The position numbers were made by a program, and so were the translations under genes. Shown one piece after another: positions 17,101 to 42,376 of a stretch of DNA of 64,000 bases. The notes under the pieces were generated by a model, which did not search any database, was not told the origin of the DNA, and saw only the letters and a program-made list of their open reading frames with translations. The stretch lies in IMG/VR virus record IMGVR_UViG_3300042922_000643, positions 124,001 to 188,000 of that record; one strand, given 5' to 3'. Every line of letters starts with the position of its first letter. Positions within the stretch are counted from its first letter, which is position 1.

Positions 17101-18335
17101 TTCTTATCGACTTCGTACCCTTTGCCAGCGAACTCTTTAACAATAGAAGATAGAGTATCTCCCTTTTTAATAATATAAGTATGAGTTGTTTTTGTTGTCA
17201 GCTCGTTGTCATAGCGCATCCGAGCAAGTTCTTCTTGAATCTTTTTTTCGGCAGCGACCTTTAGAGCTTCGTCTTCAGCCTGAATAGCCTGGACCTTATC
17301 GCTGGAGTCATAGCCTTCAACGTATTCCCAGTTAATCGTATCAAACTTTGTGTTGTTATTCTGATACTGATATGTTGCCGATGGGAAACCAAGAGGCACA
17401 TGTCTTTCTTTGCCTTGGTCATCAAAGTAAGTAAACTGCGTAGAGCTTGCAAGCAAACTTTTATTCGCATTGATGTACCATTCGCTGTCAGATAAAGCTT
17501 CGTCAGCCAGAGCATATACTGTCTTATAGACAACACCCATCCAACGGCTACCTGTTCCGTCTTTTGCGGGTGCATTATTCTTTACATCAATATCAACAAT
17601 AACTGTGCCTCCAGCAATGCTTAAGATATCGACAGTTGCTTGTTTGCCTAGCGCACCAATTTGATAGGTGGTATCCATATCGATCTTGTATTTTCTAGAG
17701 ATCTCATTATTCCGATTATCTGCATCCTCAGAAACAGAACCGTTAATGTTCTTAAGTGTCTCAGCAGTATCTACTCCTGCATAACGAATACGAATAGTTT
17801 TTCCTTCATCAAAATCATCGTATGTATTTAGGCTGTTCCCACGGCGAGATATTAAGACATCAATAGTATCTCCGTCGATAACTGTTCCTTTACCGACAAC
17901 TAACCAAGAACGGTCACCAGGGAGATGCTCCCAGACCAGGTCATATTTATTACCAAAGTAAAAAGTCTTTGTCCGTTCCTTACCGAGGTTCACGCTGTTG
18001 ATATCATACTTAGAAGGATTTAGCTCTTTCAAGATAAGATTATACGCTTGAATAGAGAGGTCAAGGCTGGAGACATTAATTCTCCCGCCCTCTGTCTCTT
18101 TAGTGTATTTCAGGTAAAAGTCTTCATCATATGTGACGCCGCTGTTCCATTTCCAGTCACTGTTCGCAGCTTCAAGCATGGCAATGACCTCAACCAAACG
18201 AGCACCTACAAAGGAAGCTACCTTATTATCTTTCCATATTGTCAATTCAGCTTTACCATCAGGAGTCAGGAAGCTCGCTTCCCAACTCTTACTATATGGA
18301 TTTCTATGTACCCGTGCTGCGTTTACTGAGATCAT
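11106..18335 (-). CDS. 2409-aa baseplate hub fusion: SNase fold + LysM + two tube-like repeats + lytic transglycosylase + gp27/GpD-like hub + hydrophobic C-terminus
   Basis: VIDGDT/RYAGVDTAE (SNase); YIIKKGDTLSSI (LysM); TVPGFP twice; LLSQESGW...AGIGQI...AVVAYN (SLT); IHLRLGYG...FNGTITE...GDPSVKPHD...VKDVTHSF (hub). Confidence 0.8.
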   Translation of the reverse strand: MISVNAARVHRNPYSKSWEASFLTPDGKAELTIWKDNKVASFVGARLVEVIAMLEAANSDWKWNSGVTYDEDFYLKYTKETEGGRINVSSLDLSIQAYNLILKELNPSKYDINSVNLGKERTKTFYFGNKYDLVWEHLPGDRSWLVVGKGTVIDGDTIDVLISRRGNSLNTYDDFDEGKTIRIRYAGVDTAETLKNINGSVSEDADNRNNEISRKYKIDMDTTYQIGALGKQATVDILSIAGGTVIVDIDVKNNAPAKDGTGSRWMGVVYKTVYALADEALSDSEWYINANKSLLASSTQFTYFDDQGKERHVPLGFPSATYQYQNNNTKFDTINWEYVEGYDSSDKVQAIQAEDEALKVAAEKKIQEELARMRYDNELTTKTTHTYIIKKGDTLSSIVKEFAGKGYEVDKNTLISANNLLPDENGNFVLYPSITSIVVPIVVKLTEAQKQNEFVVGAEAIQDNTLNFFSGMDDRRSMTSPYHMRIGDVQFIIPPLSIQVNTTSSIEKVKTLRTKSSMMVKAGSSHQTISLQLYFHDLESINGYPVKMADGGYYYMDGLRSLIAQFKKAPFLPIENEYINEVMNIHDVILVNLNVATVPGFPHSIAATLILAQFDHEAYMPHVEFLDQQINYPMFRWYYQQTMRDQKNPYRSYLAPIEGELTNDFHFTIASESDLAERQDSVKELRFLSSASEFNTEYADGKNLLGRMAIDGERVSQALDQLNRCASLRVRKGKDFPSKFSPTLNKDVYEAIYGKNFSLANSDAFYLPMECTFGLISRTTDLIVLRVSAETNRAKIPKKLLITDVAMNNKNQDLYAFDPNNTTHLGYLVTINKSEIQANFQKTAYNVNYQKLQEKANSSEGTIIMEDYYVDNVLITSMNVTYENNFAQVSTQMGDHPTYQYMGSQDPYIQVTMETDDRNAIRSIRELIEKSDYYSKKYRLGISSGFVGFENQLTRLFGVNSVMIESCVTRTVPGFPNRFQIEMTLCGFDKTQKRSETLDGFAATDSTKIEERHVSTVEGRDPIVVERKMKDLELYPDLELPTYQELNNALGYIKAGIRAYHNPSGAKYVDPDFYISTSWTYRNYLKQYKYEKETGTETEIGLTRIQDYSGFVATTKLDSENIFDADDANMAMFNKLAQDTEAARNASTELTKVSFMSNQDSSETARTAFSTEEGSEPTTNWGGVGKTLQSSGQSVDSWMENFSNVTAFPTQTEIDAWTGVSGVTLQQFLVNPTKLEVYKEIYAIIDELFAGFVFDERKSSSKVVKEKLTYASMDDYAKASYLWLKHSGDPKWKNAPSISIGSIPYSDLNATKGMITRERAANILKSLLSQESGWEQLYHGANGYTAKLYPGESSSQRKQAAAGIGQITLIVHAYSVSEARRLTWDWKFNIRRMATIFKAQLKKMNESDDIQVRSRTWEWAVVAYNKPKNFKERKLKSEYYVPVIEKWFEGRYNSTEKKFATPSAKLDNSVYSYLNNVSSTAVALIRTDREAMIKEIIRFEQQYSVIIDQRVKDERVEKISDEILMKMYKIYSQSPLVLDKNPLVLSLETAKQAPKSDLQVYQEYTTVAKALGINNLKYNETPQETWRDMFTDMCEYDQRGRMLRAFPTFQMFIIDEGRWMANYRLWDNFYGFNAITSIDVHKSRNIAADTAVVKMTNIYSNLTSRRMEDRYGDWEYSIWDNFIFGQPTQELLNARTELVDGMFLQTGARIHLRLGYGSDATSLPVMFNGTITEMDTDDLITIIAQGDGIELTNVISADPDETNDAFMKKLTEPRDLLAKLMTSKGNWFKDAINYQSGGRFFKDNPLGILHFGNPVKTPGTNASIGSIFGWHITDAQYGEAVQNIYSSNGANTFSQWTYQDGASMGVKWNGFGFLPQWSGDEMDIEMKLYGQSTWDVAQTLAYTSPDYIAAVLPFETRSTLFFGKPYYRVAYRYDSLYNWNELDSYWERVVTKEVRKPFQQFHIYNSITDIIGNKIKASEDGVYTNIIARSASGEQSLLQQADFDIRYDKQKTKVIETNLTDPSPLVPDFWTIDKQLNYYAQSVLRDSVKDMYKGTLTVLGDPSVKPHDMCHMTDIVHEMNGPFLVKDVTHSFSLETGFITMITPDAVVVVDDMSTISRATWFCSASIGLSSYVLGKYLAARTMSKIMGTAAVSKAAQWTGSVTGNAMLRLASMLSPEKGDADFGRFKELLREYDDVKKPGAIRSEAKVIEEMGQVLEKMKGKVSTIEGTGLKKLGKVSRKGLVSVSEGIVKNLGEGKNAMNFLKVGGFLVGGPLIAVDVLAGLAVSYIAATWAEAFLRNKKARQAVMIMPMKYQQRNFTAGINGYAGSVVGSKPGKMDQFYMGAGYAGADDWTAALGKTLNYFFDNQSLNPFDEEAGLGSVDYYINSGERTESSGSNDTYIEESWTNNE

Positions 18336-18349
18336 CCGCTCTACTCCTC

Positions 18350-21300
18350 CTATGAGATGATACGACCTCCGCTAATCGCTTGGGATACAATCCCTTGTAG
18401 CCATTGCTGATCTAGGTTCGTCGTATTATCTTGTACATTCATATTCATGTTTAACTGCATTGGCATCATAGCGTTAAGTTCTCCATGCACCAGTGCAGCG
18501 ATTTGTTGTTCACTCATCGTGGAGGCCTGCTTGCTGTTAATCGAGATATTAATGTGTTCTCCATCCTCGTTCGGTGTAACTCGTGCAGTAGGAGATTTAT
18601 CAAGCATTCCCATCGCAGAACCGCGAGGCATAGACTCTTCAATAACTCCATCCTTACCTCGAACTGTTTCTTCAGGAGTAGGACCACCTCTAGTGATTGC
18701 ACTAGCAGCCCAAAGCCCTCCGAAGACTAAACCAGCAGCTCTGATTGTGCCAAACCCTGCCGAACCTCCACCGCCAAAGCCTGCGGCAAATCTGTCAGCT
18801 AACTCCCGTACTTTTTCCCCAGAATTTTTAGCGGTAGTAGCTCCGCCTAGTAGTTCCTCGCTAAGAGGTGTTGCCTGAGATTCACGAAGTAGACTACCCA
18901 TATTTGGCTCTTCCAAGTTAGATGCTAAAGCCTTACTAGAGTATGATAAGGGTTTTTCTAGTGATTCCGCAATACGAGGATCAAAATTAATTAAATGTTG
19001 CATACCAGGTGTTTCTAAAATTGAAGTTCCTTTGCCTCGCAGCATGTTACTCAAGTCTTCTGGGGATTTGATCCCTTCAGAAACGAATAGTTTATCGGAT
19101 ACGTCATTGAAGAGTCCGCGGCTTCTTCCTGTATACTGCCCTGTCTTTTGCAGGCTATCAAGCATGTGTTCAAATTCAAATGGTTGAGCGTCAGTTGGAG
19201 TGAAGCCAGCGCCTGAAGCAGTATCGAAAATTCCAAGCACGGAGTTTGCTTTACGGATACGCTCAATACCATCACCATCAGGACGATTGATACCGCCTTT
19301 CAGGTCTTCTAAGGCAGCATCCCGTTGGATGAGGTTTGTTCGTGCATATTCCTGAGCAGCTTCAAGTGTTGCGCCTTCGTTATTCGCAATATAGCTCTGT
19401 ACGAAGTCCTCTATCTTGAATTTTTTGGAAGAGATTGCTTTCTGGGAAACGGCTCGACCAAAGTCATCCAAGTGACTTCTCATTGTTGATAGTTCAGCAG
19501 AGCGCTCTTCGGTTAGCATTCCGCCAGACTTGAGTGTCTCTTTAACCCCGTAAATCAAACTCGAAAGCTTATAACGAGTATTATCGAGGACCCCTACATC
19601 CGCTTTACCTAAACGTGCGATAGCTGTTTCAGCATCTTGAAGCGGACCGACTTTAGGTGCCCATTGCTCGTGGAATTCTTTACGGAACTCTGCACTTCTC
19701 CACAGCTCTTGAACTGTTACCCCTTGGGCCGATGCCTTGCTCTCGATATCTGAGCGAACTTCTTTAGCGACAGCTTCAAATTCTGGCAACGATCCTTGAT
19801 GGATTTTAGCCATAGCTTGATGAACTTCTGCGCCCTCTTGGTATTTATAATGAGCAAGCACATTAGAGATAAAGTCACCATCATAGTCGGCATTTAGAGA
19901 AGTTGCTGTACCAACAGTGAATAGTCCTGTTCGTGCGTTCGCTTTTGTCAGTTCGTTTGAGACCTCAACCTTAAGTACAGCGTTCGTACTTTCATGGATC
20001 GTTGGATAACGGTTTACAAATCCATATAAACCCTTCTCTTTGATTTCCGCAAGTGCTGCTTCGCGCATGAACATATTCTTCGGGATACGATCACTTGTCT
20101 TAAGATTCTTATTGGCTTCTTTCCATTCTGTAGAAAGTACATTATGTCTCTCTGCATTAGTAGCTCTTAGAACCTTGTCTTCAGCGCCATCGATCATTTC
20201 CAGCATCCGCTGTTCGCTAACGTACAGGGAACCTTCTTTAAAGTTTCCACTCGCTAGAGGATTCACAGTCTGAGCACGAAACCGACCTGACATGTCCTGC
20301 TGAGATGTTAAGAGCTTCTTCGCGATACTACCTTTAGATGAAGTGATCTCATATCGAACCTGCTCATCATAATTACTAATTGCATTACGAAGGGCTGTCT
20401 CTGTTTCAGGTGTCTGAGCTGCCTGATACTCTTTCGATTTTGATGCAATCTTAATTTGCGCTTTCTGAAGATCAGTAAGTACTGCCATACTCTCATCGGC
20501 ATTAATAGGCACACTAGCGATATGAGAATCAAAGAAACGAACATATTTTCTACCGAAGTTGTCCCCTGGCAATTCGAAGAGCGCTGTTCCACCATTTTGA
20601 CGGATAGCGTCACTCATCTTTTTACCAGTTGCTTTGCCGTTCTCAAAGAGTTCGACATGCTCTCCGCCCATTTGAATTACGGTATTACTATAATCTCCAA
20701 CAGTCCGCGTTTGTCCTTTGTAACCTGACTGTGGAGGGTCAGTGAAAGTGTGTGCGGATATTTCAGTGATACCGTTATTAATACGGCCTGCACGGATACC
20801 GTCTCTATCATTGATATGGAAAGAATCACCACGTGTACGAATAACAACTTCGCCCTCACGCAAGATCCCCTTTTGCTGAAGGTCAGTATCTGTTAAGTCT
20901 AAGGAAGCACTAATGAGATTACGAGCATATCCATCGATGTCTCTGTTCTGCGCACGAGCAGCTGCACTTACATGTTTATTTACCCATGAAGAGACAGCAT
21001 TCCCTTCGCCTAAGAAACGGTCTGCGCGATCACTGATTGCTCCTGTTTCTTTAATCCCCCAGCTAACAAGACCATCAATGCTTTCAACTTTTTTCATCCG
21101 TCCCGTACGAGGATCAAAACGTCCCTCGAAGGTAGCGCCCATTGAGTTTTCCCAGTTATAGACATCTGCGTTACCAAATGATTCCTGTCCATATTCAATG
21201 GTATTCTTGAGGAAGCCACCAGCACCAATCCATTTGTTCTCTTCTTTGTCAAACTCAGAAAGGAAGTTTTGGACACTCTGAAGATTGAATGAGCCCTGGG

Positions 21301-24300
21301 CATTTGCACCCAGATTAGAGTTCATAATCAACTGACCTTTAGAAAGCTTAACATCTCCCTCACTAAGACCGAAATGTTGTGTCATAAACCCACGGATTGC
21401 ACCCATCGCATTATCCATAGCTTCGACTCTTTTAACGTCTCCAACAGTAAATTGTTTATCGATTTGCTTTTGCGCTTCATCAATAACGAGTCGAACTTTT
21501 GAGTTCACAAATGATCCGTACTGTTCCTTCGAGAACTTCGCTTTTGGAAGAACGACATCCGCTTCAATGCCTAGCGCGTTAAGGATTTCATCAGAAGCAA
21601 CACGAGCCGTAACACGGTGACCAGCCTCAGAGATGATCTTTACACCATCAGACATGGATTGAAGCTCTTCGAAGATTAAGGAGTTGTTTGTAGTATCCAG
21701 ACCTTTAAAGATTGCTTTTTCACTACGTCCATTATAACGATATGATTCTCTAACCTTATCATCCTTCATTAAAGCTCCAACAGTGATATGCCCCTTTGTT
21801 GGGCTTCCGATACGATTGTCACGATCTAACAGAGACATGATATCGCGCTCAGATTCAGTTAGAGTTTCTTTAACACGGATAATACCATCTTCGCCTATCT
21901 CAGTACCGAGCATGTCCATCAATCTACGATCAATATTTGCACCTTCAGCCATACGTATACGGCTTTCGCGAGAAGTAACAAGCCCTTTGGCATAGCTTTC
22001 ACGAACAAGAACCATACCATCATAAGTTGTCATCATCGGATTGGACTTGCCCATCGTTTTTTCCATCATACCTTTAAGCTGGGAATCGTCGATATAGGCT
22101 GTCCGAGTACTCAGATATGCAAGTTCTTGGTCGTATATATTCTTACCAACATCTGTTACTAGTCCAGGAGTCAGATATCTACTGATCTGGTCAGCACTCT
22201 TTCCTCCACGACTTAGACCATCAACTACACGATTCCGATCAAGTGGAAGATAGTTGACAGACTTTTGGATATTTTCCTGCGTCATGGAGTTCCAGAAACC
22301 AAAAGGTGTGTCTTGTCTAGCATCGACACCAACCGCAGAAAGAATATTGTTGGCGGCTAAGGTATCCTTAACGTTCTGGAAATTGATATGGAGATTCAGT
22401 TTGCTTGCATAGGTAGGCGCTTCTTGATCGAACTTTCGACGTTCCTTCATGTTTAAAGAGTCGAGGAATGATCCTTTGAATTTGCTGGAGGCTTCATACT
22501 CTTTCTTTTTAAGAGCTTCACTACCATATTGATCTGCATACCAGCTTTTAGCAAGACCTGCTACATCAATCTGACCTGTGCGCAATCGTTTTGCACGGAG
22601 TGATTTACGAGCCTCTTCCTTCGTTAAACCATCTTCACTCATATATTTATTGTTCATAGAGAGAGATCCTATAGTTTGACGAACAATATTATTTCCCCAA
22701 GATTCACTTTCAGGTGCGCGACCTTGAAGTACAAGGTCTTTAATTTTCTTCGAGGAGCGAATCAGTTGCTGGCTCACAACATCGACACCAGAACCTAGCA
22801 TAAGCTTGCCGCGGTTGCGTCCCGTGCTCATCTCCATGGTCATAAGACGAGCAGATCTTTCCTGCCCAGGAACGAATACGTTGTTTTTCTCATTCAGAAG
22901 GGGCACCTTGATTGCGGCGACTTTACTGTGTTCAATAATCTCGTTTCCTTTAAGGCTGAAGATCTCTGCGGCTTGCTTTTTATTAGTCAGCGCCATTACT
23001 AGACCTTTATGCTTTTCATCATAAACAAATCCAACGGCAACGTCGTCAGAGGAGAATGCTCTTGCAAGATCCGTAAGTGTTTCAGAGATGCCTTGGCTTA
23101 CCAATGAAGAGTTTTTAGCTCCCGTGGATTCGAGTATATTATTGAATACCTTGTCATGAGTCTGGATCATCTGGTTAAAGATACTGTCTGTAGGATTGAT
23201 CAGGCCCTGACCTTGCCAGGAATTCGAGCGGAATGGAACGGCAGGAAGGATTGCGCGTTGATGAATCGATGCACGCTTACCGCCGTACCCACTACGAATT
23301 TTTTGAGCACGCAAAGGGTTCACATTAAAAGGATCTTCAACGGTCATAGTACTCATACCCATACCGTTGAGTCCTTTAGCTTGTTCATAGGTATGTTCTT
23401 GATGAATACGACCTGCAATTTCAGTGTAAAGTGTACCTAAAGAGTCATGGTCATCTAGGCGATCAATCAATCGGTACATTTCTTTAGCCGCTGAACCTGT
23501 AAGTCCTGAGCGACCTTTCGTACGTAGCTCATCGATCATTGTTTTGAGACGCTTTTTCGTAATACGCATCGATGGCTTGCCCATATCATAGCCGCTACCT
23601 ACAACACGTTTGATCCCCGACTCAACACTAGCAGGATCTTTTAATGAAATGTTATGTATTTCCCCATCCATCTTAATAGGGATTACTTTTTGGCTATCTG
23701 GAAGCTGAACTTCCATTGTGTTTCCACCAAATTCAGCGTCAATGATCTTACGATAGTTTTTCAGAGCTACGCCTTGGGCATATTTAGCACTAGAGCTGTC
23801 ACCTTGAAGCGGAGATTTCTCCAATTCAGAGATAAAGTCAAGGATATGATCCTTTTCCCCTGCTACACGCTTCTTCAAAAGCTGGTAGTCTCGAACAAAT
23901 TCAGGTTTTGCTTCTTGGAAGACGCCCTTATTGTCCATGTATCCAAGTGCTTTTCGGACTTCCTCTGGGGATTTGCCAGCTGCTTCAGCTTCAACCCCGC
24001 CAATCATTCGTTTAATCTGTGTAACGCCGCCTTCAGGACTGAATAAACGGTCCCAACGACGACGAGCGCGGTCAGCCATAGTGTTTCCTTGCAGTGTTTT
24101 ACGCTCAATTTCAGATAGATGATCCATAGGAATGAAATGCTGCCCAAAAACAGAACGCAATTCATCTTCGCTTTCTCTAAAAATCATGTGATAAAGGTCT
24201 TCGCCATCAGGAGTTTGGTTGCGAAGTACAGCTCCAAAGTGGCTTTTCCCATCAATCTGGAAATCTTTAACTGTTTTTTCTAATGTATAAGCTGTATTTT

Positions 24301-25618
24301 TATAAATTGGGTTCGGTTTAATATTTTCATACACAGGAACAAGCTGACCTTTTTCGTCTCGCTTATAAACCATATCAAATTTACCATTACGTGATGCTTC
24401 AAACGAAGACATGCCACTAACCGAGAATAAGGAGTCGCCCATTTTAAAAGGAGTTCTATCCCACGAAGCACTGAGAGGACCTTTCACTCCAATACCATTC
24501 GGACCAATCAGATTCTGAGAAGAAACCAGCTTGTTAAAAATGTCCGCGGAAGTGTTCAAGTCATCAATCGCTGTATGCGCAACACCCTTAGAGATACCAA
24601 GCATGTCTGCAACCTGCTCTTGTTTCAGGTTCTTACCAAATATACTAGCTTGATTGCGGAAAAACGTTCTAAAGATCTGAAGATTATCCACTACTCGACC
24701 TGAACCGAAGCTGTTTACTAACGCTGTTAGCTCTTTCTGTTGCTTAGGACTAGTAACTAGCGGGTTTAGATGGTTCATTAAATAGTCTTTCATCATTGGA
24801 ATATCGTAAGCATCAATGTTTGCGCCACCAATAATCGCATTCTTTCGCCCACCAATAACTCGTGCAAGCTCACTTACAACTTGTTCTGGTGAACTGCCGT
24901 AAGATAAGTTAGTACGACCTTTATGCATCCGCTTTACTTGGTCAGGAGTAAAGATAAATCCTGTAGGAGCCTGCTTGTCTCGAAGCTGTCTATTAAGATA
25001 GGTAGCGCCGTTTTTACCTTTACTGAAATAACCATTGCCAAATGGATCATCATCCCCATAGAGGATAAGGTCATTCAACGTACGGCGTTCATCTTTTGAC
25101 AATGAGCTTGTGGCATAACCATTACTCGCTACTTTCTGAAGCAGAGAATCAATATGAGCAAAGACATTGTCTGTAGGCCGAACAAGAAGAGATACCTCTT
25201 TGGACTTTGGCATTCTTTCAAAGGTATAATTGCTGGAAACTTTCCGCTGTCCAATCGCTATTTCTGTTGGGGAATACCAAGGGAGGCTATCGCTACCTTT
25301 GCCTCCGAAAGTACCCAGGTTTTCTATGTCCATCATAAATACATTGTCTCCAGGTCTTACGGATAACAAATTTTCGATGGTCTTTTGCGGACTCGAACCA
25401 AACCAATTGCCAGGGCTTACGCTACGGTAGATACCAAGCTCTTCAGCGGGAGCCCCAAGCATACCTTGTGCATTTCGGGCATAAATCTCCCCAAGCGGTT
25501 CGCTTCTTTTAAAAGATCCGCTTCGAATGCTAGACCAGACCAGGCGAGAATTCTCGCCCGATCCTATGTATGTATAATTCAGTTTAGCTTTCTTCGCTGC
25601 GTCTTCGTAACTAGCCAT
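18350..25618 (-). CDS. Single-chain double-psi-beta-barrel (multisubunit-type) RNA polymerase with N-terminal DEDDh exonuclease; putative virion RNAP
   Basis: NADYDGD at 19874-19894; FVNRYPTIHES at about 19988-20020; SKGSIAKKLLTSQQDMSGRF at about 20280-20340; beta-like TYDGMVLVRE and GVKIISEAGHRVT; DEDDh motifs MMDIENLG / GANIDAYD / AHTAIDD. Confidence 0.88.
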   Translation of the reverse strand: MASYEDAAKKAKLNYTYIGSGENSRLVWSSIRSGSFKRSEPLGEIYARNAQGMLGAPAEELGIYRSVSPGNWFGSSPQKTIENLLSVRPGDNVFMMDIENLGTFGGKGSDSLPWYSPTEIAIGQRKVSSNYTFERMPKSKEVSLLVRPTDNVFAHIDSLLQKVASNGYATSSLSKDERRTLNDLILYGDDDPFGNGYFSKGKNGATYLNRQLRDKQAPTGFIFTPDQVKRMHKGRTNLSYGSSPEQVVSELARVIGGRKNAIIGGANIDAYDIPMMKDYLMNHLNPLVTSPKQQKELTALVNSFGSGRVVDNLQIFRTFFRNQASIFGKNLKQEQVADMLGISKGVAHTAIDDLNTSADIFNKLVSSQNLIGPNGIGVKGPLSASWDRTPFKMGDSLFSVSGMSSFEASRNGKFDMVYKRDEKGQLVPVYENIKPNPIYKNTAYTLEKTVKDFQIDGKSHFGAVLRNQTPDGEDLYHMIFRESEDELRSVFGQHFIPMDHLSEIERKTLQGNTMADRARRRWDRLFSPEGGVTQIKRMIGGVEAEAAGKSPEEVRKALGYMDNKGVFQEAKPEFVRDYQLLKKRVAGEKDHILDFISELEKSPLQGDSSSAKYAQGVALKNYRKIIDAEFGGNTMEVQLPDSQKVIPIKMDGEIHNISLKDPASVESGIKRVVGSGYDMGKPSMRITKKRLKTMIDELRTKGRSGLTGSAAKEMYRLIDRLDDHDSLGTLYTEIAGRIHQEHTYEQAKGLNGMGMSTMTVEDPFNVNPLRAQKIRSGYGGKRASIHQRAILPAVPFRSNSWQGQGLINPTDSIFNQMIQTHDKVFNNILESTGAKNSSLVSQGISETLTDLARAFSSDDVAVGFVYDEKHKGLVMALTNKKQAAEIFSLKGNEIIEHSKVAAIKVPLLNEKNNVFVPGQERSARLMTMEMSTGRNRGKLMLGSGVDVVSQQLIRSSKKIKDLVLQGRAPESESWGNNIVRQTIGSLSMNNKYMSEDGLTKEEARKSLRAKRLRTGQIDVAGLAKSWYADQYGSEALKKKEYEASSKFKGSFLDSLNMKERRKFDQEAPTYASKLNLHINFQNVKDTLAANNILSAVGVDARQDTPFGFWNSMTQENIQKSVNYLPLDRNRVVDGLSRGGKSADQISRYLTPGLVTDVGKNIYDQELAYLSTRTAYIDDSQLKGMMEKTMGKSNPMMTTYDGMVLVRESYAKGLVTSRESRIRMAEGANIDRRLMDMLGTEIGEDGIIRVKETLTESERDIMSLLDRDNRIGSPTKGHITVGALMKDDKVRESYRYNGRSEKAIFKGLDTTNNSLIFEELQSMSDGVKIISEAGHRVTARVASDEILNALGIEADVVLPKAKFSKEQYGSFVNSKVRLVIDEAQKQIDKQFTVGDVKRVEAMDNAMGAIRGFMTQHFGLSEGDVKLSKGQLIMNSNLGANAQGSFNLQSVQNFLSEFDKEENKWIGAGGFLKNTIEYGQESFGNADVYNWENSMGATFEGRFDPRTGRMKKVESIDGLVSWGIKETGAISDRADRFLGEGNAVSSWVNKHVSAAARAQNRDIDGYARNLISASLDLTDTDLQQKGILREGEVVIRTRGDSFHINDRDGIRAGRINNGITEISAHTFTDPPQSGYKGQTRTVGDYSNTVIQMGGEHVELFENGKATGKKMSDAIRQNGGTALFELPGDNFGRKYVRFFDSHIASVPINADESMAVLTDLQKAQIKIASKSKEYQAAQTPETETALRNAISNYDEQVRYEITSSKGSIAKKLLTSQQDMSGRFRAQTVNPLASGNFKEGSLYVSEQRMLEMIDGAEDKVLRATNAERHNVLSTEWKEANKNLKTSDRIPKNMFMREAALAEIKEKGLYGFVNRYPTIHESTNAVLKVEVSNELTKANARTGLFTVGTATSLNADYDGDFISNVLAHYKYQEGAEVHQAMAKIHQGSLPEFEAVAKEVRSDIESKASAQGVTVQELWRSAEFRKEFHEQWAPKVGPLQDAETAIARLGKADVGVLDNTRYKLSSLIYGVKETLKSGGMLTEERSAELSTMRSHLDDFGRAVSQKAISSKKFKIEDFVQSYIANNEGATLEAAQEYARTNLIQRDAALEDLKGGINRPDGDGIERIRKANSVLGIFDTASGAGFTPTDAQPFEFEHMLDSLQKTGQYTGRSRGLFNDVSDKLFVSEGIKSPEDLSNMLRGKGTSILETPGMQHLINFDPRIAESLEKPLSYSSKALASNLEEPNMGSLLRESQATPLSEELLGGATTAKNSGEKVRELADRFAAGFGGGGSAGFGTIRAAGLVFGGLWAASAITRGGPTPEETVRGKDGVIEESMPRGSAMGMLDKSPTARVTPNEDGEHINISINSKQASTMSEQQIAALVHGELNAMMPMQLNMNMNVQDNTTNLDQQWLQGIVSQAISGGRIIS

Positions 25619-25632
25619 CGCTACATTCCCCT

Positions 25633-28600
25633 TTATCCAAATATTGAACCCATGTTATTGTTAAACTCCGAGACGATTTCATCTCTACGGTCTTTGATAA
25701 AGTCCATTGCAAGACTTATCTTATTCTCACCCTGTAAAGGTGAAGTCGTCATACTCACCTGCGCATCCTTAAGCCCTGCGCCTTGAAGAATCTTTTCGAT
25801 TCTAGTGATATCAATCGACATGCTAGGGCGGAATGGTTCAATTCGATTAACCCCAGAAGAGTCTGCATTCTTTACATCATCCTGCCACATTCCAAACTCT
25901 GTCAGTTCTAGACCTTCGTTTCGAACGACTTTAAGTTTGATATCGTCAAGATTGACATTGGCATCCCAGCCCTCCCACTTTGCATTAGGGAGATAGTGAT
26001 CCTTAAAGTACGAGTTTAAGCTCTCAGGCTCGTCTGTGTCCATACCCCATTTTGCTTGGTAGAACCGACGCTGATTCTTAGGAACCAACCGAAGAATTTC
26101 TTCTCTTTCTTTCGGAGCCGCAGTCATAAATTGAGTAAAGAATTCACGGTCCTTACTAGGAAGAGCTCGGAAGATCTTTGTCATGTCTCCATTCGGATCT
26201 GCCCCGTATAGTGTGGACTCATACTGCTCTTTATATTGCAGAGCTTGCATCGTCTTCGAACCGATACGGTAAGAACCGCGGTCTTGATCGATCATCTTGA
26301 GTCGGCTACGAACATTATCTAACTGTTCCTCGACTACGTCCTCGTCAACATAACCTATCTTCTTCGCCATGGAAAGCCATTTTTTCGAAGCATCCAGATA
26401 ATTACGAAGTTTTTTATTCTTTTGACCGCGGTCACCGCTGTCTCCGACAAGTTGATCGACGTCGATCCCCTCTTCGTCCTTAGCTCGCTCAGCAGCTCTC
26501 TCGTAGAGACCTTTATACTTCATGTATTTCAGAACATCGAAATACTCATTAATAGCACGTTCTTTTTCTCTTCGCTTAGGAATCCAGGCGTAGTCATCTC
26601 CACCAGGAGAACGACGACCTACAAATTCGTCGATGCTACGTGCAGCCGCGAGTCCACCAAAGACAGCAGCTCCAACCCACTTACCATAATACTTACCTGC
26701 GCCCTTCTTACCAAAGAGCCATCCAATACCATAGCCTTGTGCTGCACCAACCAGAGGATTCTGAGAGGCTGCGGTTTCCAACATCGGCTGAATCCATCCA
26801 CCCCAAGGATCTGTCCAAGGTCTCCAAGCTTTACCATAGACTTCATTCTTCTTGTACATTTCAAGTGGTGAACGAACCTGCATAAACTTGTCTGCAATTA
26901 CCCCAACGATTGGGATCTTCGGAATAGCATCATGAGTCATCCATTCCATCATGCGGCCTACGGTGACCTGCGTCTTGTCATACATAGCGATAGTGCCTAC
27001 ACCCGTATTTTCACCTGAAGCATTTACGCCGTCTTTCTTATCAAACTTACGAGCCAGCATTGCATTAACGGATTGCCCTTTGGTACTCATATAGAAAGGA
27101 TTGTGGTCATTGCCGTTACTATATACAACAGCGTGCATCGTGTTCATCGTATCGTCACGGACTCTATTGATTGGGTCAGCGTCTACACCAATCGTAATTT
27201 TAGCGCCCTCGTAGATATACTGCTGGAGCCATTCTTTCGCCTTCTCTGCATCCGCTTTTACCTTAACACCTGCAAGACGAATTGGATTGTTTGGATGTTC
27301 CGCAGTTAAGAAAGTATTCGCATCAAGAACCTTAGTAACAGTCACTTTCTGGTTATCGACTTCTGCATTGCGGAATTTGTTTGGATAGAAGTGGTATTTA
27401 TCTTTCTTAGCAGCCACTTGATCACGGACTTCTGCGTATTCATCTTCCATGCCCGTAGTCAGTGCGCCTGCTTCTTTCATCTGAGAAACCATTCGACGCC
27501 AGTATTTATATTCATCAGAGTAAGGTGCAACGTCAGCCAGGATCTTGAATCGATCAAATGCACCATAGTCTCCAAAGGTGTCAGGATGGAGCTTGTTAAG
27601 GCTCTCATACGCAGCGCCAGGAAGTCTCATTTCACCCTTAGCAACTTTAGTATATGGGTCTCCATGTTGGAAATCGATGAAGTAGTTAACGCCTGGCAAC
27701 CAATCAGGCATCTTATTTTGCAGAGGATTGTAATACTGTTTACGTGGATCTTTTGCTAGATAACGACGAGCAATTTCTGAGAACTCGCCGCCGAAGAATC
27801 CATCGGCACCGCCCATTTCCATATCCCAGAAGGAACGGCCATAACTCATCATACGGCTGGAGCGGTCTAACTTCTGACTCCGAATATTCGTATCTATTCC
27901 CATTGCCATATTTGCAGAGAAACCATAGATACCCGCTTGTTCTGTAAGGCCGTACCACATGTCTCCAAGGACCTGTGAGCCGCTGTACGGGCTTCCAATG
28001 TCCTTAAGGTCTGCTACAAAGTCTGGGTCACGAAGCGACTCCAGGCTGCTCATAGGGCGTGCTGGGAGCAACATACCGCCACCAGGTCCTACACCAGCAC
28101 CAGCGCCTGTTCCTCCAGCACCAGCAGCAACTATACCTGCGTTGATAGATCCGAGATTGTCCATAGCCAAAGCACCTGTAGTATAAGCGCCTGAGCTACT
28201 AGGACCACTTTTCCCATACCGAGTTAGCTGCGGAAGAGAAGGAGCATCTAATGAAGAAAGACCTTCACCAAAACCACCTCCGAAGGAGGAAGACTCAGAT
28301 AGCAGGTTGTATCCACCCGCAGGCATGAACTGAATAACGCCTTCACCTGTCGCGCTATCATACTGAGAAGTAATGTAATCATTAACTTCTTTCTGGTACT
28401 CACGGTGAGCCTTCGACAGGTCTTTGTTTTCACGATATGGATTGAGTAGACCACCAACTGTTCGATTTAGAGCAGGCCCAATAAGCGGGATCATTCCCAG
28501 CTCTTGAATGCCTCCACTAATTGGATAAGGGCGATCTTCAGCATGCTTTTTCTCATAGTGATCTGGATCAGTCAAGAAGTGCTTAATTGGAGCAAACGGA

Positions 28601-31600
28601 TGAGTAAGAGTAGGCATCCAACTATTAGCCCAGTACTCACTCTCACTACCGTACATTGTGTCTGTGAACTTATAATCAGACTTCATGCGGCGATACCAGT
28701 TAGGCTGGAAGCGGTCTATCTTTCCGCCTTCCCAAGGGGTTGTTGAGCCTATTCCCCACCAGCGGCCTTTGCGGACAGCGTCTTCTCCGCTTTCATAGTA
28801 ATGACGAAGTTCATCCTCACTACGAGTGTCCCCAAAGAATCCAAATGATCCATACTTAACAGCAGCACCAATAGGTGTTTTCCATAGCTGATCTAAGCCA
28901 GGTATCAATTCTGCGAACTCTTTACCGATCTGATTAATGCCAGTAAACTGTTTAAACCATGCAGTATCCAAAGACATGTTCGCATATGTATCCGCGGCTT
29001 TGTCACTGACTCTATCACCAGTCATACCGTCCAGGTGTTGCAACTGCTGAAGAGCAACATATGGAAGAACAATTCGCCGTCCAAACTGGTTGGTTATGAT
29101 ACTCTGCATCGATCCTCTATTTTTTTGAGAGAGACCAAGACCGATCTTCGCCAGGGAGTTGTCCAGACGTTCTGCAAAGTAGTACGGAATCATAGATGCC
29201 ATAGTAAAGTCTTGAATATTTTTGCGGCCTGCAAATGGTTGACCTAGAACCTTCATAGCAGAACTTGTTGATGCTTTTAGAGGACTTACTCCGTCTGTAA
29301 TTTGACGATTAATGTCTTCAAGCATCCAGTTCTTACCTCGGCCTTTATTCATGACGAGGTTACCGACTAAACCAAAAGGCTGTGGAGGTTGATCGCCAGG
29401 GCCCATGGACCATATTGGTGTGTAGTTTGTTACGGTATTAGAAAGAACTTCTCTGAAATCATCACGACGTATTAGATCGCCCTTAAAAGCTTCTAATGCT
29501 TCAGTCTTAGCTTGCGGACCTAAACGATAAACATCGTCCCAGTAGCGGTGTAACTCGTTAAGGACAGACAAATCCCCAACTTCTCTTGCTGCTTTCTCAG
29601 GAAGATTACCGTTCTTGATTCCTTCGCGAACGAGATCTGCTACAGAAACCTGAGCAGTTTGCTCGATCTGTTCAATAGCGTGCTGATGGATTAAGCGTTT
29701 AACATCGTCAATTCTATTTACTATATTAGTTTCGTGTACGTCTAAAGGCTGTAGAGGTCCCATGAGGTAAGGAGCATTGTCAGAGACAATACGCTTACCC
29801 TTTAGAAATTCCCCTTGGTTGTTGTGGTACTTCTCCCAAGTCTCGCTGACCTGACTGCCTACTTTACGCATGGCAATCCGACCATTCTTTTCACTCATAC
29901 CCGCACGAATACGGCCTAGAGACCCCATAATATCATCAGGCCCAAATAAGTTTCCTAGATCGATATTCGACTCTCCGTACGCTTGCTTCGCATAACTATT
30001 TAAGAAGTTTGCAGTATCATCGGACAAGGGCTTTGCTCTGGAGTTAATTTCTGCGTAGATATCCTTGTAAGAAGATTCTAAATCTTTGATCGTTGCATCA
30101 TCTTTAAAAATTGTTTTGTAGCGGTTACGCATCCAGTTTGGATCATCAAACTTGGTGAATGTGCTTAATGCTCGACTAAGAATAGTTTCAGACTCTTGTC
30201 CGCCGATATCAAATAATCGTTTAATGAATCCGCGATTAGCTCCAGCGCCCGTATGTAAGTTTGCAATGGAAGACATTGCTCTTGGAATAGCACCGAATCT
30301 AGCAGAGGCCAGCGTTACATTATCCTTAACAATTTCACCACTAACCAAATCCATAACTTTATTATTAGAGTACAGATAGTCTCGGCTCAGTACACCTACG
30401 GCAGCGTCTTGATTATGAGCCCGTGGATGTCTTAAGGTTTCGGCCACCCCATGTAAAGAAGGCTGGATAGTTCCTCGTTGCATCAAGTATGTTTTTGGAG
30501 CTTCTTTCATTGCTTCGTATGTGGTCCAGTGTGCAAGATCCAATGGGTTAAATCTCAGGAAAGGGACTTGGAAGTTTTGTTGAACGAACGAAGCAGACTT
30601 ATATAGACCTTCATGGAGACTTCTAGTATCTACGATATGTCCCGCATCATTAATGAATATACGGTGGTCTGCAACAAGATCAAGGAATCTGCTGTCTTTA
30701 TTGGCCATTGCAGCGATTTTATTACCTATACGGCCATTGACAGCCTCACCATTAATACGGCGGCGAATGACAGAGTCATTATCAAAGAGCTTATTGACCC
30801 ATTTTCCTGATTCATTCTTCTCTAGTAAATCTTTATTTACAACGGGACGGTATCCTGCACCACCCATCATTTTCGTAAGGAATGTTTCTTTCTTTTGATG
30901 GCGAGAAACAAAGTCATCAATGAGCTTGTTTTTCAGATTAACACTGCCCTGTACAGGAACACCATCAATAGATCCAGGCCGTTTTGCACCTCGAAGAACA
31001 CGACGGTCTAGTCGTCTAGCATCTGCTCTTTTTTGGAGAGTAGTGAACATTCCCTCAACAAATTCTTTACGAGCTGTCTCATCAGGAAGTTCTATCGAGA
31101 ATGCATTGTTATTCTTAACTTTATTTTCAGGACTGTATCTCTTCAACATATTCTCAATTCGTTCTACTCCAGGGTTCAGGAAGAAGTCCGAATCTTGAGC
31201 GTGAAGGTCATTAAGAATTTCACCAAGTCCTCTTTCAAAATGCTGAGGGAATTTGGTCTTGAGATCATTCATTGCCAACGTCTTTTGAGTAGAACGAATA
31301 TAACTTCGGCCTGTCGAAGAGAGATCAGTAATCAGCTGGCTATAATCTGTTTCAATATTAGTAGGCATACCGCCTAGTATACTTTGTTGTCTACGTATAG
31401 CTGTTTCGGTACTTCGAGATAAAGAGGATTCTAATCGCTGATTAAACCTCTCTGGGTTTAAAAAATGAGATACAGGGGAGCGTCGGTCTAAAGCATGATC
31501 AAGTGCTTTGATACCTGACATTGCATCCCCGATGAGGCCACCTATCTTAGGGGCCTGGTGAAGGTATGAAGCCGTTCTAAGAGCTGCACCCCCAACGATA

Positions 31601-31758
31601 CGGCCTGCGTCTCCAAGCGTCTCAGACGCCATCCTACGAGTTGCTGGGGACAGTGCGAGGGTGGCAGCAGCGCCAAGTGCAGCAATACCCCAGACCCCGT
31701 GATGAGTCTCTTGTTCTTTCTCACTATTCAGGTATCTTGAGTATTGGTTATCCGCCAC
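25633..31758 (-). CDS. 2041-aa tape-measure-like protein with a degenerate SNase-fold domain
   Basis: First gene after the tail chaperones; helical with Gly-rich hydrophobic segments at both ends; VTKVLDANTF...IRLAGVK...VNAMLARK at about 27040-27350. Confidence 0.6.
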   Translation of the reverse strand: MADNQYSRYLNSEKEQETHHGVWGIAALGAAATLALSPATRRMASETLGDAGRIVGGAALRTASYLHQAPKIGGLIGDAMSGIKALDHALDRRSPVSHFLNPERFNQRLESSLSRSTETAIRRQQSILGGMPTNIETDYSQLITDLSSTGRSYIRSTQKTLAMNDLKTKFPQHFERGLGEILNDLHAQDSDFFLNPGVERIENMLKRYSPENKVKNNNAFSIELPDETARKEFVEGMFTTLQKRADARRLDRRVLRGAKRPGSIDGVPVQGSVNLKNKLIDDFVSRHQKKETFLTKMMGGAGYRPVVNKDLLEKNESGKWVNKLFDNDSVIRRRINGEAVNGRIGNKIAAMANKDSRFLDLVADHRIFINDAGHIVDTRSLHEGLYKSASFVQQNFQVPFLRFNPLDLAHWTTYEAMKEAPKTYLMQRGTIQPSLHGVAETLRHPRAHNQDAAVGVLSRDYLYSNNKVMDLVSGEIVKDNVTLASARFGAIPRAMSSIANLHTGAGANRGFIKRLFDIGGQESETILSRALSTFTKFDDPNWMRNRYKTIFKDDATIKDLESSYKDIYAEINSRAKPLSDDTANFLNSYAKQAYGESNIDLGNLFGPDDIMGSLGRIRAGMSEKNGRIAMRKVGSQVSETWEKYHNNQGEFLKGKRIVSDNAPYLMGPLQPLDVHETNIVNRIDDVKRLIHQHAIEQIEQTAQVSVADLVREGIKNGNLPEKAAREVGDLSVLNELHRYWDDVYRLGPQAKTEALEAFKGDLIRRDDFREVLSNTVTNYTPIWSMGPGDQPPQPFGLVGNLVMNKGRGKNWMLEDINRQITDGVSPLKASTSSAMKVLGQPFAGRKNIQDFTMASMIPYYFAERLDNSLAKIGLGLSQKNRGSMQSIITNQFGRRIVLPYVALQQLQHLDGMTGDRVSDKAADTYANMSLDTAWFKQFTGINQIGKEFAELIPGLDQLWKTPIGAAVKYGSFGFFGDTRSEDELRHYYESGEDAVRKGRWWGIGSTTPWEGGKIDRFQPNWYRRMKSDYKFTDTMYGSESEYWANSWMPTLTHPFAPIKHFLTDPDHYEKKHAEDRPYPISGGIQELGMIPLIGPALNRTVGGLLNPYRENKDLSKAHREYQKEVNDYITSQYDSATGEGVIQFMPAGGYNLLSESSSFGGGFGEGLSSLDAPSLPQLTRYGKSGPSSSGAYTTGALAMDNLGSINAGIVAAGAGGTGAGAGVGPGGGMLLPARPMSSLESLRDPDFVADLKDIGSPYSGSQVLGDMWYGLTEQAGIYGFSANMAMGIDTNIRSQKLDRSSRMMSYGRSFWDMEMGGADGFFGGEFSEIARRYLAKDPRKQYYNPLQNKMPDWLPGVNYFIDFQHGDPYTKVAKGEMRLPGAAYESLNKLHPDTFGDYGAFDRFKILADVAPYSDEYKYWRRMVSQMKEAGALTTGMEDEYAEVRDQVAAKKDKYHFYPNKFRNAEVDNQKVTVTKVLDANTFLTAEHPNNPIRLAGVKVKADAEKAKEWLQQYIYEGAKITIGVDADPINRVRDDTMNTMHAVVYSNGNDHNPFYMSTKGQSVNAMLARKFDKKDGVNASGENTGVGTIAMYDKTQVTVGRMMEWMTHDAIPKIPIVGVIADKFMQVRSPLEMYKKNEVYGKAWRPWTDPWGGWIQPMLETAASQNPLVGAAQGYGIGWLFGKKGAGKYYGKWVGAAVFGGLAAARSIDEFVGRRSPGGDDYAWIPKRREKERAINEYFDVLKYMKYKGLYERAAERAKDEEGIDVDQLVGDSGDRGQKNKKLRNYLDASKKWLSMAKKIGYVDEDVVEEQLDNVRSRLKMIDQDRGSYRIGSKTMQALQYKEQYESTLYGADPNGDMTKIFRALPSKDREFFTQFMTAAPKEREEILRLVPKNQRRFYQAKWGMDTDEPESLNSYFKDHYLPNAKWEGWDANVNLDDIKLKVVRNEGLELTEFGMWQDDVKNADSSGVNRIEPFRPSMSIDITRIEKILQGAGLKDAQVSMTTSPLQGENKISLAMDFIKDRRDEIVSEFNNNMGSIFG

Positions 31759-31763
31759 TTATC

Positions 31764-32270
31764 TCATCTCTCTTCTTCGAGTTCTATACCATCAAATGTT
31801 TTGAGTACCCACTTAGCTCTTGAGTAGAACCACATTGTTTTATCGATTCCCCATGTCTCAATTTCTTCGAGTCTATACTGAGGAAATGCCTTCCCGATAA
31901 CACAAGTAAGCTGATTATCAAATGAATTCATCTCGTTATCATATTTAAACATAAGTTCTTTAACGATACTTTGTCCATCAATAAAGCCCGATTGAGTGAG
32001 GATCTCTGTTGTTATTGTCTCTGGAATACCCGCGCCTAGATCCGAAGTGTAATCAATCCCCGCAGGATCAAGAACACAGACAGAACAAACATACTCTGCG
32101 CGGTCAAATTCATCTTCATACATCTCCATAGCTTTGCGGTATTCAGAACGACTAAGAGCTCTAAATACATAGAATGTTTCTCCTATTTCAACAGCATACA
32201 CGTTTTGATAGATCTCTTTCCATTTCTCAATCTGGATTCTGGCTTGCTTCTCTGTTAGTTGTTCAGCCAC
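31764..32270 (-). CDS. Tail assembly chaperone (paralog 2)
   Basis: KWKEIYQNVY...VFRALSRSEY...GIPETI...SGF; GTG start at 32270 after GGAGGAG (ORF-track start 32303 lies in a hairpin). Confidence 0.7.
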   Translation of the reverse strand: MAEQLTEKQARIQIEKWKEIYQNVYAVEIGETFYVFRALSRSEYRKAMEMYEDEFDRAEYVCSVCVLDPAGIDYTSDLGAGIPETITTEILTQSGFIDGQSIVKELMFKYDNEMNSFDNQLTCVIGKAFPQYRLEEIETWGIDKTMWFYSRAKWVLKTFDGIELEEER

Positions 32271-32283
32271 GGTTTCTCCTCCT

Positions 32284-32317
32284 AAATAAAGAGAGGCCCT
32301 CATAAGAAGGCCTCTCT
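32284..32317 (-). terminator. Intrinsic terminator-like hairpin between the two chaperone genes
   Basis: AGAGAGGCC-10nt-GGCCTCTCT perfect 9-bp stem followed by a T-rich run on the minus strand. Confidence 0.6.
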
Positions 32318-32327
32318 GGGATATGTA

Positions 32328-34235: not shown

Positions 34236-34272
34236 ATAAAATAGAGAGGGCCCTGTGAGAGCCCTCCCCGTT
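34236..34272 (-). terminator. Intrinsic terminator after the major tube gene
   Basis: Minus strand GGGGAGGGCTC-TCACA-GGGCCCTCTC then TATTTTATT. Confidence 0.7.
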
Positions 34273-34277
34273 TGGTG

Positions 34278-34862: not shown

Positions 34863-34876
34863 TAGTTAGTTCCTCC

Positions 34877-42309: not shown

Positions 42310-42376
42310 TAGTATGAGTCCTCCTTCATATTTATATGGTGGGGAGGTCTCCCTCCCTCACCATGAGGTTTGTTAA

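Follow-up and report, generated by a model that had tools for sequence, protein, structure and literature searches.

A predicted DnaQ-type exonuclease and a predicted RNA polymerase in one giant tail-module protein of a jumbo phage

To characterize the locus, we analysed a 64,000-nucleotide window (positions 124,001 to 188,000) of the IMG/VR record IMGVR_UViG_3300042922_000643, which belongs to a ~251-kb phage. The window contains three giant genes on the minus strand, lying between the tail chaperones and the baseplate of a jumbo myophage related to Bacillus phages WH1, Edson and KLEB27-3. Two paralogous small genes (31764-32816, minus strand, both phrog_29362) occupy the position of the two-gene tail chaperonin; WH1 gp097 and gp098 are annotated 'tail chaperonin', as are 0305phi8-36 ORF143 and ORF144. 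They are followed by giant C (25633-31758, minus strand, 2041 aa), the first member of the conserved trio, which has an N-terminal hydrophobic segment and sits in the slot of 0305phi8-36 ORF145, then by giant B (18350-25618, minus strand, 2422 aa), and finally by giant A (11106-18335, minus strand, 2409 aa), a baseplate hub with a cell-wall hydrolase that is homologous to 0305phi8-36 ORF147 (phrog_20474 at E 1e-225; tblastn match to the ORF147 'baseplate hub protein'). The three giants are not paralogues. Giant B is preceded by a Shine-Dalgarno-like AGGGGA (25627-25632, minus strand), 8-9 nt upstream of its ATG at 25616-25618. It is encoded in the tape-measure slot, which giant C shares, at the place of 0305phi8-36 gp146. 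Homologues of giant B are 2200-2600 aa long; the WH1 homologue gp095 is annotated 'virion structural protein' and that of KLEB27-3 'structural protein', from which we infer a virion protein here. We first considered a crAss-like phage, but rejected this identity because tblastn finds only Bacillus jumbo myophages and the gene context is a contractile-tail module.

An earlier note, made from the sequence alone, had claimed an intact DEDDh 3'-5' exonuclease at 24540-25345, fused to the N-terminus of an RNA polymerase, and this observation is confirmed. The domain spans aa ~85-372 (24503-25366, minus strand), and its motifs lie where the note placed them: ExoI in MMDIENLG at aa 95-102 (25313-25336), with D97-x-E99 at 25322-25330; ExoII in GGANIDAYDIPMM at aa 264-276 (24791-24829), with N267...D272 at 24803-24820; and ExoIII in VAHTAIDD at aa 346-353 (24560-24583), with H348-x4-D353 at 24560-24577. 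A further acidic residue, D311 of the 'VDNL' strand (24686-24688), we equate with the epsilon-type 'D-T/S-L' motif.

Four lines of evidence show that this is not a chance motif match. PHROG family phrog_192 'DNA polymerase exonuclease subunit' hits aa 241-367 at E 5e-9, and a profile of the N-terminus finds bona fide Pfam RNase_T proteins among 1.8 billion sequences. The AF2 model has pLDDT 85-95 over aa ~80-370, and its top 50 PDB matches are almost all DEDDh-type exonucleases or exonuclease domains; the model of aa ~91-366 superposes on Pol III epsilon over 170 of 175 residues (rmsd 2.5 Å, Z 14.3). More broadly, the fold (Z 13-14, rmsd 2.5-3.5 Å over ~170-190 residues) and the D-E-D-H-D catalytic set are shared with E. 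coli Pol III epsilon, Exonuclease I, RNase T and Orn. In 79 giant homologues (cluster representatives at 50% identity or less), D97, D272, D311 and D353 are kept in 79/79 and E99, N267 and H348 in 78/79, while neighbouring columns vary freely. Since these sequences share as little as ~15-30% identity, such retention makes a catalytically silent scaffold, kept only for assembly or tail-length determination, the least likely of the readings considered; nothing specific speaks for it beyond the failure of the Pfam RNase_T model to reach threshold.

The domain is nevertheless divergent. Pfam searches of the whole protein and of its N-terminus gave no RNase_T hit, only sub-threshold DUF6576, HTH_3 and Rpb1_2 hits, and no PF00929 hit was found anywhere in the genome at E<=1. 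The HTH_3 and Sigma70_r4 hits at aa 329-344 are the normal helix that precedes ExoIII, not a DNA-binding HTH. PDB sequence searches with the single protein found nothing, whereas profile searches gave only sub-threshold but motif-correct hits, aligning ExoII with the RB69/T4 polymerase ExoII motif and ExoIII with that of Exonuclease I. A pattern scan of IMG/VR with the N-terminal profile found no relatives. A family-specific insert of ~80 aa (aa ~166-243; 24890-25123, minus strand), modelled as helix, hairpin, helix, separates the ExoI and ExoII elements. It carries a conserved RR motif, DERRTLNDLILYG (25055-25093), which is invariant in the 8 close homologues, and in the 79 giants R179 is kept in 64 and Y187 in 75.

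Downstream of the exonuclease lies a conserved block (aa ~395-535; 24014-24436, minus strand; TPLxxGD ... DRARRRY), which is poorly modelled and has no assigned fold, and an ESM Atlas search with aa 370-1420 gave only weak leads. Residues ~1490-2110 (19289-21151, minus strand) form a predicted single-chain two-barrel RNA polymerase core, with the predicted catalytic DYDGD, the metal-binding loop of a beta'-type double-psi barrel, at aa 1911-1915 (19874-19888) and NRYPTIH at aa 1869-1875 (19994-20014). The AF2 model of aa 1420-2120 has pLDDT 89, and it hits bacterial beta' at Foldseek E ~4e-8 and QDE-1, Rpb1, vaccinia Rpo147 and RDR2 at Z ~10-11, QDE-1 being the best fold match that spans the core. 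For the second, beta-type barrel, judged by alignment without inspection of the barrel itself, QDE-1 and RDR2 align over model residues 58-694, and G1516, G1521 and K1523 are invariant in the 8 close homologues. PDB sequence searches with the protein and its family profiles returned no RNA polymerase entry. Towards the C-terminus, a conserved Gly/Ala-rich hydrophobic segment at the hydropathy maximum (aa 2287-2309; 18692-18760, minus strand) is a possible membrane-inserting element, a role that is inferred, and it is followed by a conserved C-terminal domain (aa 2340-2422; 18353-18601, minus strand) that matches the C-terminus of Moorella phage MTATph1 CDS0031 at E 2e-9.

The note had set conservation of the fusion and of the catalytic residues as tests, and both hold. 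All 79 giants found with the exonuclease profile carry the domain at or near the N-terminus, and 78 of them have the polymerase core. DxDGD occurs once in 73 of the 79; three of the six others have DxDSD or DxDAD, and five of the six hit the polymerase-core HMM. R1870, P1872 and D-x-D-G-D are invariant in 73 sequences, although that alignment was anchored on the motif. Conversely, all 25 proteins found with the polymerase core carry the exonuclease, the single exception, from B. stercoris, being a split gene whose upstream piece holds the exonuclease.

Next, we asked whether the exonuclease depends on the polymerase. 0305phi8-36 gp146, annotated 'hypothetical tape measure protein' and marked in its record as a virion protein identified by mass spectrometry, lies in the same slot between ORF145 and the hub ORF147. 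Together with 7 relatives it keeps DIETTG, GQNVADAD and GLHLARAD plus the downstream block, but has no DxDGD and no polymerase-core HMM hit. Its exonuclease module is internal (aa ~1200-1700), with large inserts, and the YonO-like polymerase of that phage, gp99, is a separate gene outside the structural (virion) gene arm. The module is not annotated in the record, and 'exonuclease' occurs only once in the 2007 paper, for a different gene. The match to gp146 is weak by single-domain score (16.9 bits) and there is no Pfam or PHROG hit; hhalign of the exonuclease profile against the gp146-family profile aligned only ExoIII plus the TPLxxGD block, at 6% probability. The link therefore rests on collinear motifs, on family conservation and on a transitive connection through MTATph1, whose CDS0027 has an internal exonuclease (HMM E 2e-34; phrog_192 E 5e-11) together with the downstream block. 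The MTATph1 gene is broken by a transposase, so its lack of a polymerase may be secondary and it is ambiguous on this point. A further giant, P0108, occupies the same slot of a trio, has the exonuclease together with the downstream block and also lacks the polymerase.

The association with the polymerase is thus not obligate: the exonuclease belongs to the tail protein rather than to the polymerase, which argues against RNA proofreading. The interpretation in the note was only partly supported: its structural claim stands, but it had not recognised a tail-module (tape-measure-slot) protein of a jumbo myophage, a context that changes how the domain should be read, and of its three functional options we favour one. 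The first, a built-in RNA proofreader or 3'-trimmer that would remove misincorporated or backtracked 3' nucleotides and stand in for Gre/TFIIS-type factors, is unlikely. Within this clade the two domains always occur together, Orn, RNase T, ERI and 3'hExo appear among the fold matches, and nidovirus nsp14 shows that a DEDDh domain can proofread RNA synthesis. However, besides the polymerase-less relatives, more than 1100 residues separate the two active sites, two-barrel polymerases have intrinsic transcript cleavage, a virion polymerase that makes a few early transcripts is under little pressure for fidelity, and the nearest sequence relatives are DNA-polymerase-type exonucleases.

The second option, degradation of defence signalling oligonucleotides, is unlikely for cyclic signals, because DEDD exonucleases need a free 3'-OH end, though linear oligonucleotides are not excluded. 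A broader version, an injected anti-defence or host-takeover nuclease acting on linear signals, retron or other defence single-stranded DNA, host mRNA, primers or nicked host DNA, also seems unlikely, though less so than proofreading. Delivery with the virion would give the earliest possible action, the same fold occurs in Orn, the CBASS-associated Cap18 and TREX, a neighbouring hub-slot giant in one relative has a weak SNase hit, which may point to nucleases as a recurring theme in ejected tail proteins, and this reading does not need the polymerase, which fits the polymerase-less relatives. Yet only a few copies enter per infecting virion, which makes bulk degradation implausible, and no recognisable targeting domain was found. 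A role as proofreading partner of the phage replicase, with the epsilon-like domain newly made or proteolytically released, is very unlikely. The genome encodes a DnaE-type Pol III alpha (245735-248374 of the phage genome, G000) but no recognisable free epsilon, and JGI labels a homologue of giant B 'DNA polymerase III epsilon subunit-like protein', in line with the phrog_192 match; but the gene sits in the late structural operon, its product is inferred to be a virion protein, and the alpha subunit has its own PHP domain, which can proofread in some DnaE enzymes.

The third option, processing of incoming DNA ends, is the one we tentatively prefer. The two folds, the conservation of the catalytic residues, the gene position and the conservation of the fusion are what our analysis shows, whereas exonuclease activity, template-dependent RNA synthesis, presence in the virion of this phage, ejection and the following mechanism are inferred. 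In this view giant B would leave through the tail on infection, its C-terminal end would stay with the membrane conduit, and the enzymatic domains would fold in the cytoplasm where the phage DNA emerges. The exonuclease would then resect the 3'-ended strand of the entering, terminally redundant genome end, exposing single-stranded DNA, the template form that this class of polymerase prefers, for host-independent pre-early transcription, and leaving a long 5' tail that can anneal with the other terminal repeat and is a poor substrate for AddAB/RecBCD-type nucleases. The epsilon-type relatives lean towards DNA, although the substrate (DNA or RNA) cannot be read from a DEDDh fold. crAss-like gp66 transcribes single-stranded or denatured DNA but hardly double-stranded DNA, and QDE-1 behaves likewise (bioRxiv 10.1101/2020.03.07.982082), and P23-45 gp96 offers a precedent for a tape-measure-fused virion polymerase acting at the entry pore (PMC10770324). 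The lineage has terminal repeats (PMC2147016; WH1 gp299 annotation). The genome has a sigma-70-like gene, and searches for a second RNA polymerase with DxDGD, RdRP/YonO PF05183 and T7-type PF00940 found none, the PF00940 result being weak because its control gave no hit anywhere; this fits a virion polymerase for the first genes and host polymerase later. A difficulty is direction: resecting the 3' strand leaves the 5'-ended strand, so a polymerase using it as template would run towards the genome end, opposite to the inward early transcription of T7 and N4. Gene orientation at the ends could not be compared with the model, since no end repeats were found, the ends of this record fall inside genes, and those of the WH1 record also look arbitrary.

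Among described systems, Thermus phage P23-45 gp96 (Chaban et al., Nat Commun 2024, PMC10770324) is likewise a giant tail-module protein with a single-chain two-barrel polymerase and DxDGD, proposed to transcribe pre-early genes at the entry pore. P23-45, however, is a siphovirus with a second, non-virion polymerase, the gp96 polymerase lies at the N-terminus, the paper does not contain the word exonuclease, and we saw no detectable sequence similarity. [quoted passage not shown] Archaeal PolD, with a two-barrel DP2 polymerase and a DP1 exonuclease, and nidovirus nsp14 ExoN also pair a polymerase with a dedicated 3'-5' exonuclease. The PolD exonuclease is Mre11-like and PolD makes DNA, while nsp14 serves a right-hand RdRp, and in both the exonuclease is tied to its polymerase, whereas here it also occurs without one. 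Papers on these systems are PMC7281927 and 10.1101/2023.08.09.552591. Virion RNA polymerases fused to ejection or tape-measure proteins are thus already known, but literature searches for this fusion with an exonuclease, or for papers on WH1, KLEB27-3 or Edson, found nothing.

A bolder possibility, which the data leave standing but which we consider doubtful, is a self-contained 'resect-and-transcribe' ejection machine, in which an injected tail-lumen protein turns the entering double-stranded genome end into single-stranded template with its own exonuclease and transcribes it with its own QDE-1-class polymerase, without host factors, supercoiling or promoter melting. More broadly, DnaQ-type exonucleases would then be an ancestral and so far unrecognised component of tape-measure-slot ejection proteins across a large lineage of big myophages of Bacillota.

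Virion RNA polymerases fused to giant ejection or tape-measure proteins are known from N4, crAss-like phages and P23-45, and how they get access to template on freshly entering linear DNA is an open question. A strictly conserved predicted nuclease on the same polypeptide offers a concrete and testable answer, and it would add DNA-end processing at the entry site to what tail tape-measure-slot proteins are thought to do. The finding extends predicted two-barrel virion polymerases to jumbo myophages of Bacillus-type hosts, including the cultivable phages WH1, Edson and KLEB27-3, and it flags an unannotated putative exonuclease module in the well-studied 0305phi8-36 'tape measure'.

The candidate exonuclease lies within a 7.3-kb ORF at window positions 18350-25618 on the - strand, which encodes a protein of 2422 aa (giant B) and whose ATG is preceded by a Gram-positive-style AGGGGA ribosome-binding site, in a 251,543-bp virus record that CheckV rates complete and of which the window is bases 124001-188000. 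The earlier note had described an intact DEDDh 3'-5' exonuclease fused to the N-terminus of an RNA polymerase, and this observation held: the three motifs it named are present at aa 95-102 (MMDIENLG), aa 264-276 (GGANIDAYDIPMM) and aa 346-353 (VAHTAIDD). Its functional interpretation, which ranged over RNA proofreading or trimming, degradation of defence signals and processing of incoming DNA ends, is only partly supported.

Four independent lines of evidence identify the N-terminal region as a real DEDDh exonuclease domain by sequence and predicted fold. First, although Pfam misses it, the PHROG family phrog_192 'DNA polymerase exonuclease subunit' matches aa 241-367 at E 5e-9, and a profile of the N-terminal 460 aa, searched against 1.8 billion representatives, reaches small proteins that are bona fide Pfam RNase_T members. 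Second, an AlphaFold model built on 8 homologues is confident over aa ~80-370 (pLDDT 85-95), and Foldseek and VIA-align searches with it return almost only DEDDh-type enzymes. Pol III epsilon aligns over 170 of 175 residues at rmsd 2.5 Å and Z 14.3, followed by Exonuclease I, Orn, RNase T, 3'hExo/ERI, TREX, the DinG N-domain and Cap18, while in the viral library the matches are phage DEDDh and epsilon-like proteins. Third, sub-threshold PDB profile hits fall exactly on ExoII of the RB69/T4 polymerase and on ExoIII of Exonuclease I. Fourth, we examined 79 giant homologues (cluster representatives at 50% identity or less, many only 15-30% identical to this protein) and found the catalytic columns essentially invariant: D97 is kept in 79/79, E99 in 78/79, N267 in 78/79, D272 in 79/79, H348 in 78/79 and D353 in 79/79, and D311, in an epsilon-type 'D-x-L' strand, in 79/79. 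Other columns drift, e.g., T103 is kept in 37/79 and R178 in 41/79. This pattern contradicts the reading of the domain as an inactive scaffold, which we consider very improbable.

A family-specific insert of about 80 aa (aa ~166-243: helix, hairpin, helix) sits between the ExoI and ExoII elements and contains DERRTLNDLILYG, which is invariant among the close homologues. The segment NLKQEQVADMLGISKG (window 24587-24634, aa 329-344) gives weak HTH_3 and Sigma70_r4 hits, but it is the ordinary helix that precedes ExoIII in DnaQ-like domains and not a DNA-binding HTH.

The fusion to a predicted RNA polymerase was also confirmed. DYDGD lies at aa 1911-1915 and is preceded by NRYPTIH, a beta'-like signature. 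A model of aa 1420-2120 built on 73 sequences has pLDDT 89 and hits bacterial beta' subunits at Foldseek E ~4e-8, and an exhaustive structural comparison ranks QDE-1 first (Z 10.8, spanning model residues 58-694), followed by vaccinia, archaeal and eukaryotic largest subunits, plant RDR2 and jumbo-phage RNA polymerases. By predicted structure it is therefore a single-chain two-barrel polymerase of the QDE-1, crAss and YonO kind. The fusion holds in both directions. Namely, 73 of the 79 giants found through the exonuclease profile have one DxDGD, and of the six without it five hit the polymerase-core HMM and three show DxDSD or DxDAD variants. Conversely, all 25 proteins found through the polymerase core carry the exonuclease, the single exception being a B. 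stercoris gene that is split in that assembly and whose upstream piece holds the exonuclease. This Bacillus stercoris assembly (L017; GCA_030143775.1) contains a contig (JASMRE010000002.1, 223,644 bp) that looks like a phage of this kind, based on the conserved tail-module gene order in the 23-kb stretch that we read. All three giant genes are broken into pieces there, and the breaks could be sequencing frameshifts or real decay.

The only phage isolates with this protein are three Bacillus jumbo myophages, WH1, Edson and KLEB27-3, at ~30% identity, in which it is annotated as a virion or structural protein. In the window, the gene order on the - strand is the major capsid protein, two sheath-like genes, two tube-like genes, two paralogous chaperone-like genes, giant C (2041 aa), giant B, giant A (2409 aa), a peptidase/lysin and baseplate genes. 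The two sheath-like genes and the two paralogous ~190-aa genes in the tube position lie at window 33664-34221, 34278-34862, 34877-36484 and 37125-38675. The best PHROG for the ~190-aa genes is labelled 'major head protein', a label that looks wrong for genes in this position. Additionally, nearly full-length open frames lie on the strand opposite real structural genes, including the major capsid gene (window 34272-34865(+)/34278-34862(-), 41212-42312(+)/41206-42309(-) and 42383-43675(+)/42377-43681(-)), and these are probably a codon-composition artefact.

The trio of giants is conserved even around remote family members, and the three are not paralogues. Giant A (window 11106-18335) is a baseplate hub with a wall hydrolase and a C-terminal hydrophobic segment, homologous to ORF147 of phage 0305phi8-36, the baseplate hub with wall-degrading domains. 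Giant B therefore occupies the slot of 0305phi8-36 ORF146, a protein of 2537 aa that was verified as a virion protein by mass spectrometry and was assigned as the tape measure. Giant C (window 25633-31758), which has an N-terminal hydrophobic segment and no family hit, occupies the slot of ORF145. The three giants have similar lengths across the family, and there is more than one candidate for the protein that measures the tail. Giant B itself ends with a Gly/Ala-rich hydrophobic segment (aa 2287-2309) and a conserved C-terminal domain.

Outside the window, at G000:C1 241564-243789, 245735-248374 and 218393-218608, the genome encodes a kinase/phosphatase/T4-type RNA-ligase fusion, which we read as a likely tRNA-repair protein, a DnaE-type Pol III alpha and a sigma-70-like factor. 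We detected no second RNA polymerase, no other DnaQ-like domain and no free epsilon-like gene anywhere in the genome. The absence of any other epsilon-like gene might suggest that the domain serves in trans as a proofreader for the phage Pol III alpha, but this is at odds with late, structural expression and we regard it as very unlikely.

The result that changes the interpretation is that the exonuclease module is not confined to proteins that carry the polymerase. The 0305phi8-36 gp146 protein, encoded by ORF146 (locus L026, EF583821, 8600-16213) and annotated 'hypothetical tape measure protein', has no DxDGD and no match to the polymerase-core HMM. It carries an unannotated internal DEDDh-like module at about locus positions 12200-13900, namely the collinear set DIETTG (~aa 1222), GQNVADADW (~1440), VLDTL (~1485) and GLHLARADV (~1684), as well as the conserved block that follows the exonuclease in giant B. 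These motifs are conserved in seven gp146 homologues, none of which has a polymerase. The direct match is weak, with HMMER scores of 16.9 and 13.7 bits, an hhalign alignment of only the ExoIII region and no Pfam or PHROG hit, but it is bridged by Moorella phage MTATph1 (locus L027, OR602862, 9787-17143). The slot-B gene of that phage has an internal exonuclease at aa 830-1080 that matches our family profile at E 2e-34 and phrog_192 at E 5e-11, and the gp146-family profile matches the same protein at E 1e-9. That gene is interrupted by a transposase gene (CDS0028), so that the upstream piece holds the internal exonuclease and the last piece holds the conserved C-terminal domain, and its lack of a polymerase is ambiguous. 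A further relative, P0108 (1954 aa), sits in slot B of an intact trio and has the exonuclease, partly duplicated, and no polymerase core. Tandem duplicated exonuclease modules occur in some relatives (P0108, P0073 and P0095). The hub-slot giant next to P0108 (L028 15865-22626) has a weak staphylococcal-nuclease (SNase) Pfam hit, so a second nuclease may sit in an ejected or hub protein.

The polymerase-less relatives weaken the reading of the domain as an RNA proofreader or trimmer, as do the long separation of the two domains, the intrinsic cleavage activity of two-barrel polymerases and the low need for fidelity in early transcripts, and we consider this reading unlikely. An injected anti-defence or host-attack nuclease is compatible with the polymerase-less relatives and with the timing of delivery, but it is limited by copy number and is excluded for cyclic signals, which lack a 3' end. 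It remains possible yet doubtful.

Full-text searches, which did not cover many subscription-journal papers, found no description of an exonuclease in a virion or two-barrel RNA polymerase protein and no paper on WH1, KLEB27-3 or Edson. The word 'exonuclease' is absent from the P23-45 and phi14:2 papers and occurs only once in the 0305phi8-36 paper, for a different gene. One JGI automatic label, 'DNA polymerase III epsilon subunit-like protein', shows that pipelines see the domain without its context. Virion RNA polymerases fused to an ejection or tape-measure protein are already known, and here the same protein also carries an exonuclease.

The analysis itself establishes two intact predicted enzyme folds on one tail-module protein, annotated as a virion protein in its relatives, and strict purifying selection on the catalytic residues, whereas enzymatic activity, ejection and the mechanism that follows are inferred. 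In this view the protein is ejected through the tail, as proposed for P23-45 gp96 and crAss gp66, its C-terminal hydrophobic end stays with the membrane conduit, and the enzymatic domains act where the DNA emerges. We favour DNA-end processing, tentatively as a whole, although we are much more confident in two of its parts, that the domain is an active exonuclease and that it forms part of an ejected virion RNA polymerase protein. The main weakness is direction: removing the 3' strand leaves the 5'-ended strand, so transcription on it would run outward, an objection that this record, whose true ends are undetermined, does not remove. In favour of this reading, the function must make sense without a polymerase in cis, only a few copies would enter each cell, which suits a stoichiometric substrate such as the phage's own DNA ends, and the nearest sequence relatives are epsilon-type DNA exonucleases. 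The lineage has terminal repeats, so limited resection is harmless, and it would also yield annealable ends that resist AddAB. This class of polymerase prefers single-stranded template in vitro, so in the clade that carries the polymerase, resection would also supply template. Given the polymerase-less relatives, the exonuclease, together with its downstream block, is a module of the slot-B tail protein, inferred to be ejected, across a wider lineage, and the polymerase is present in one large clade of that lineage.
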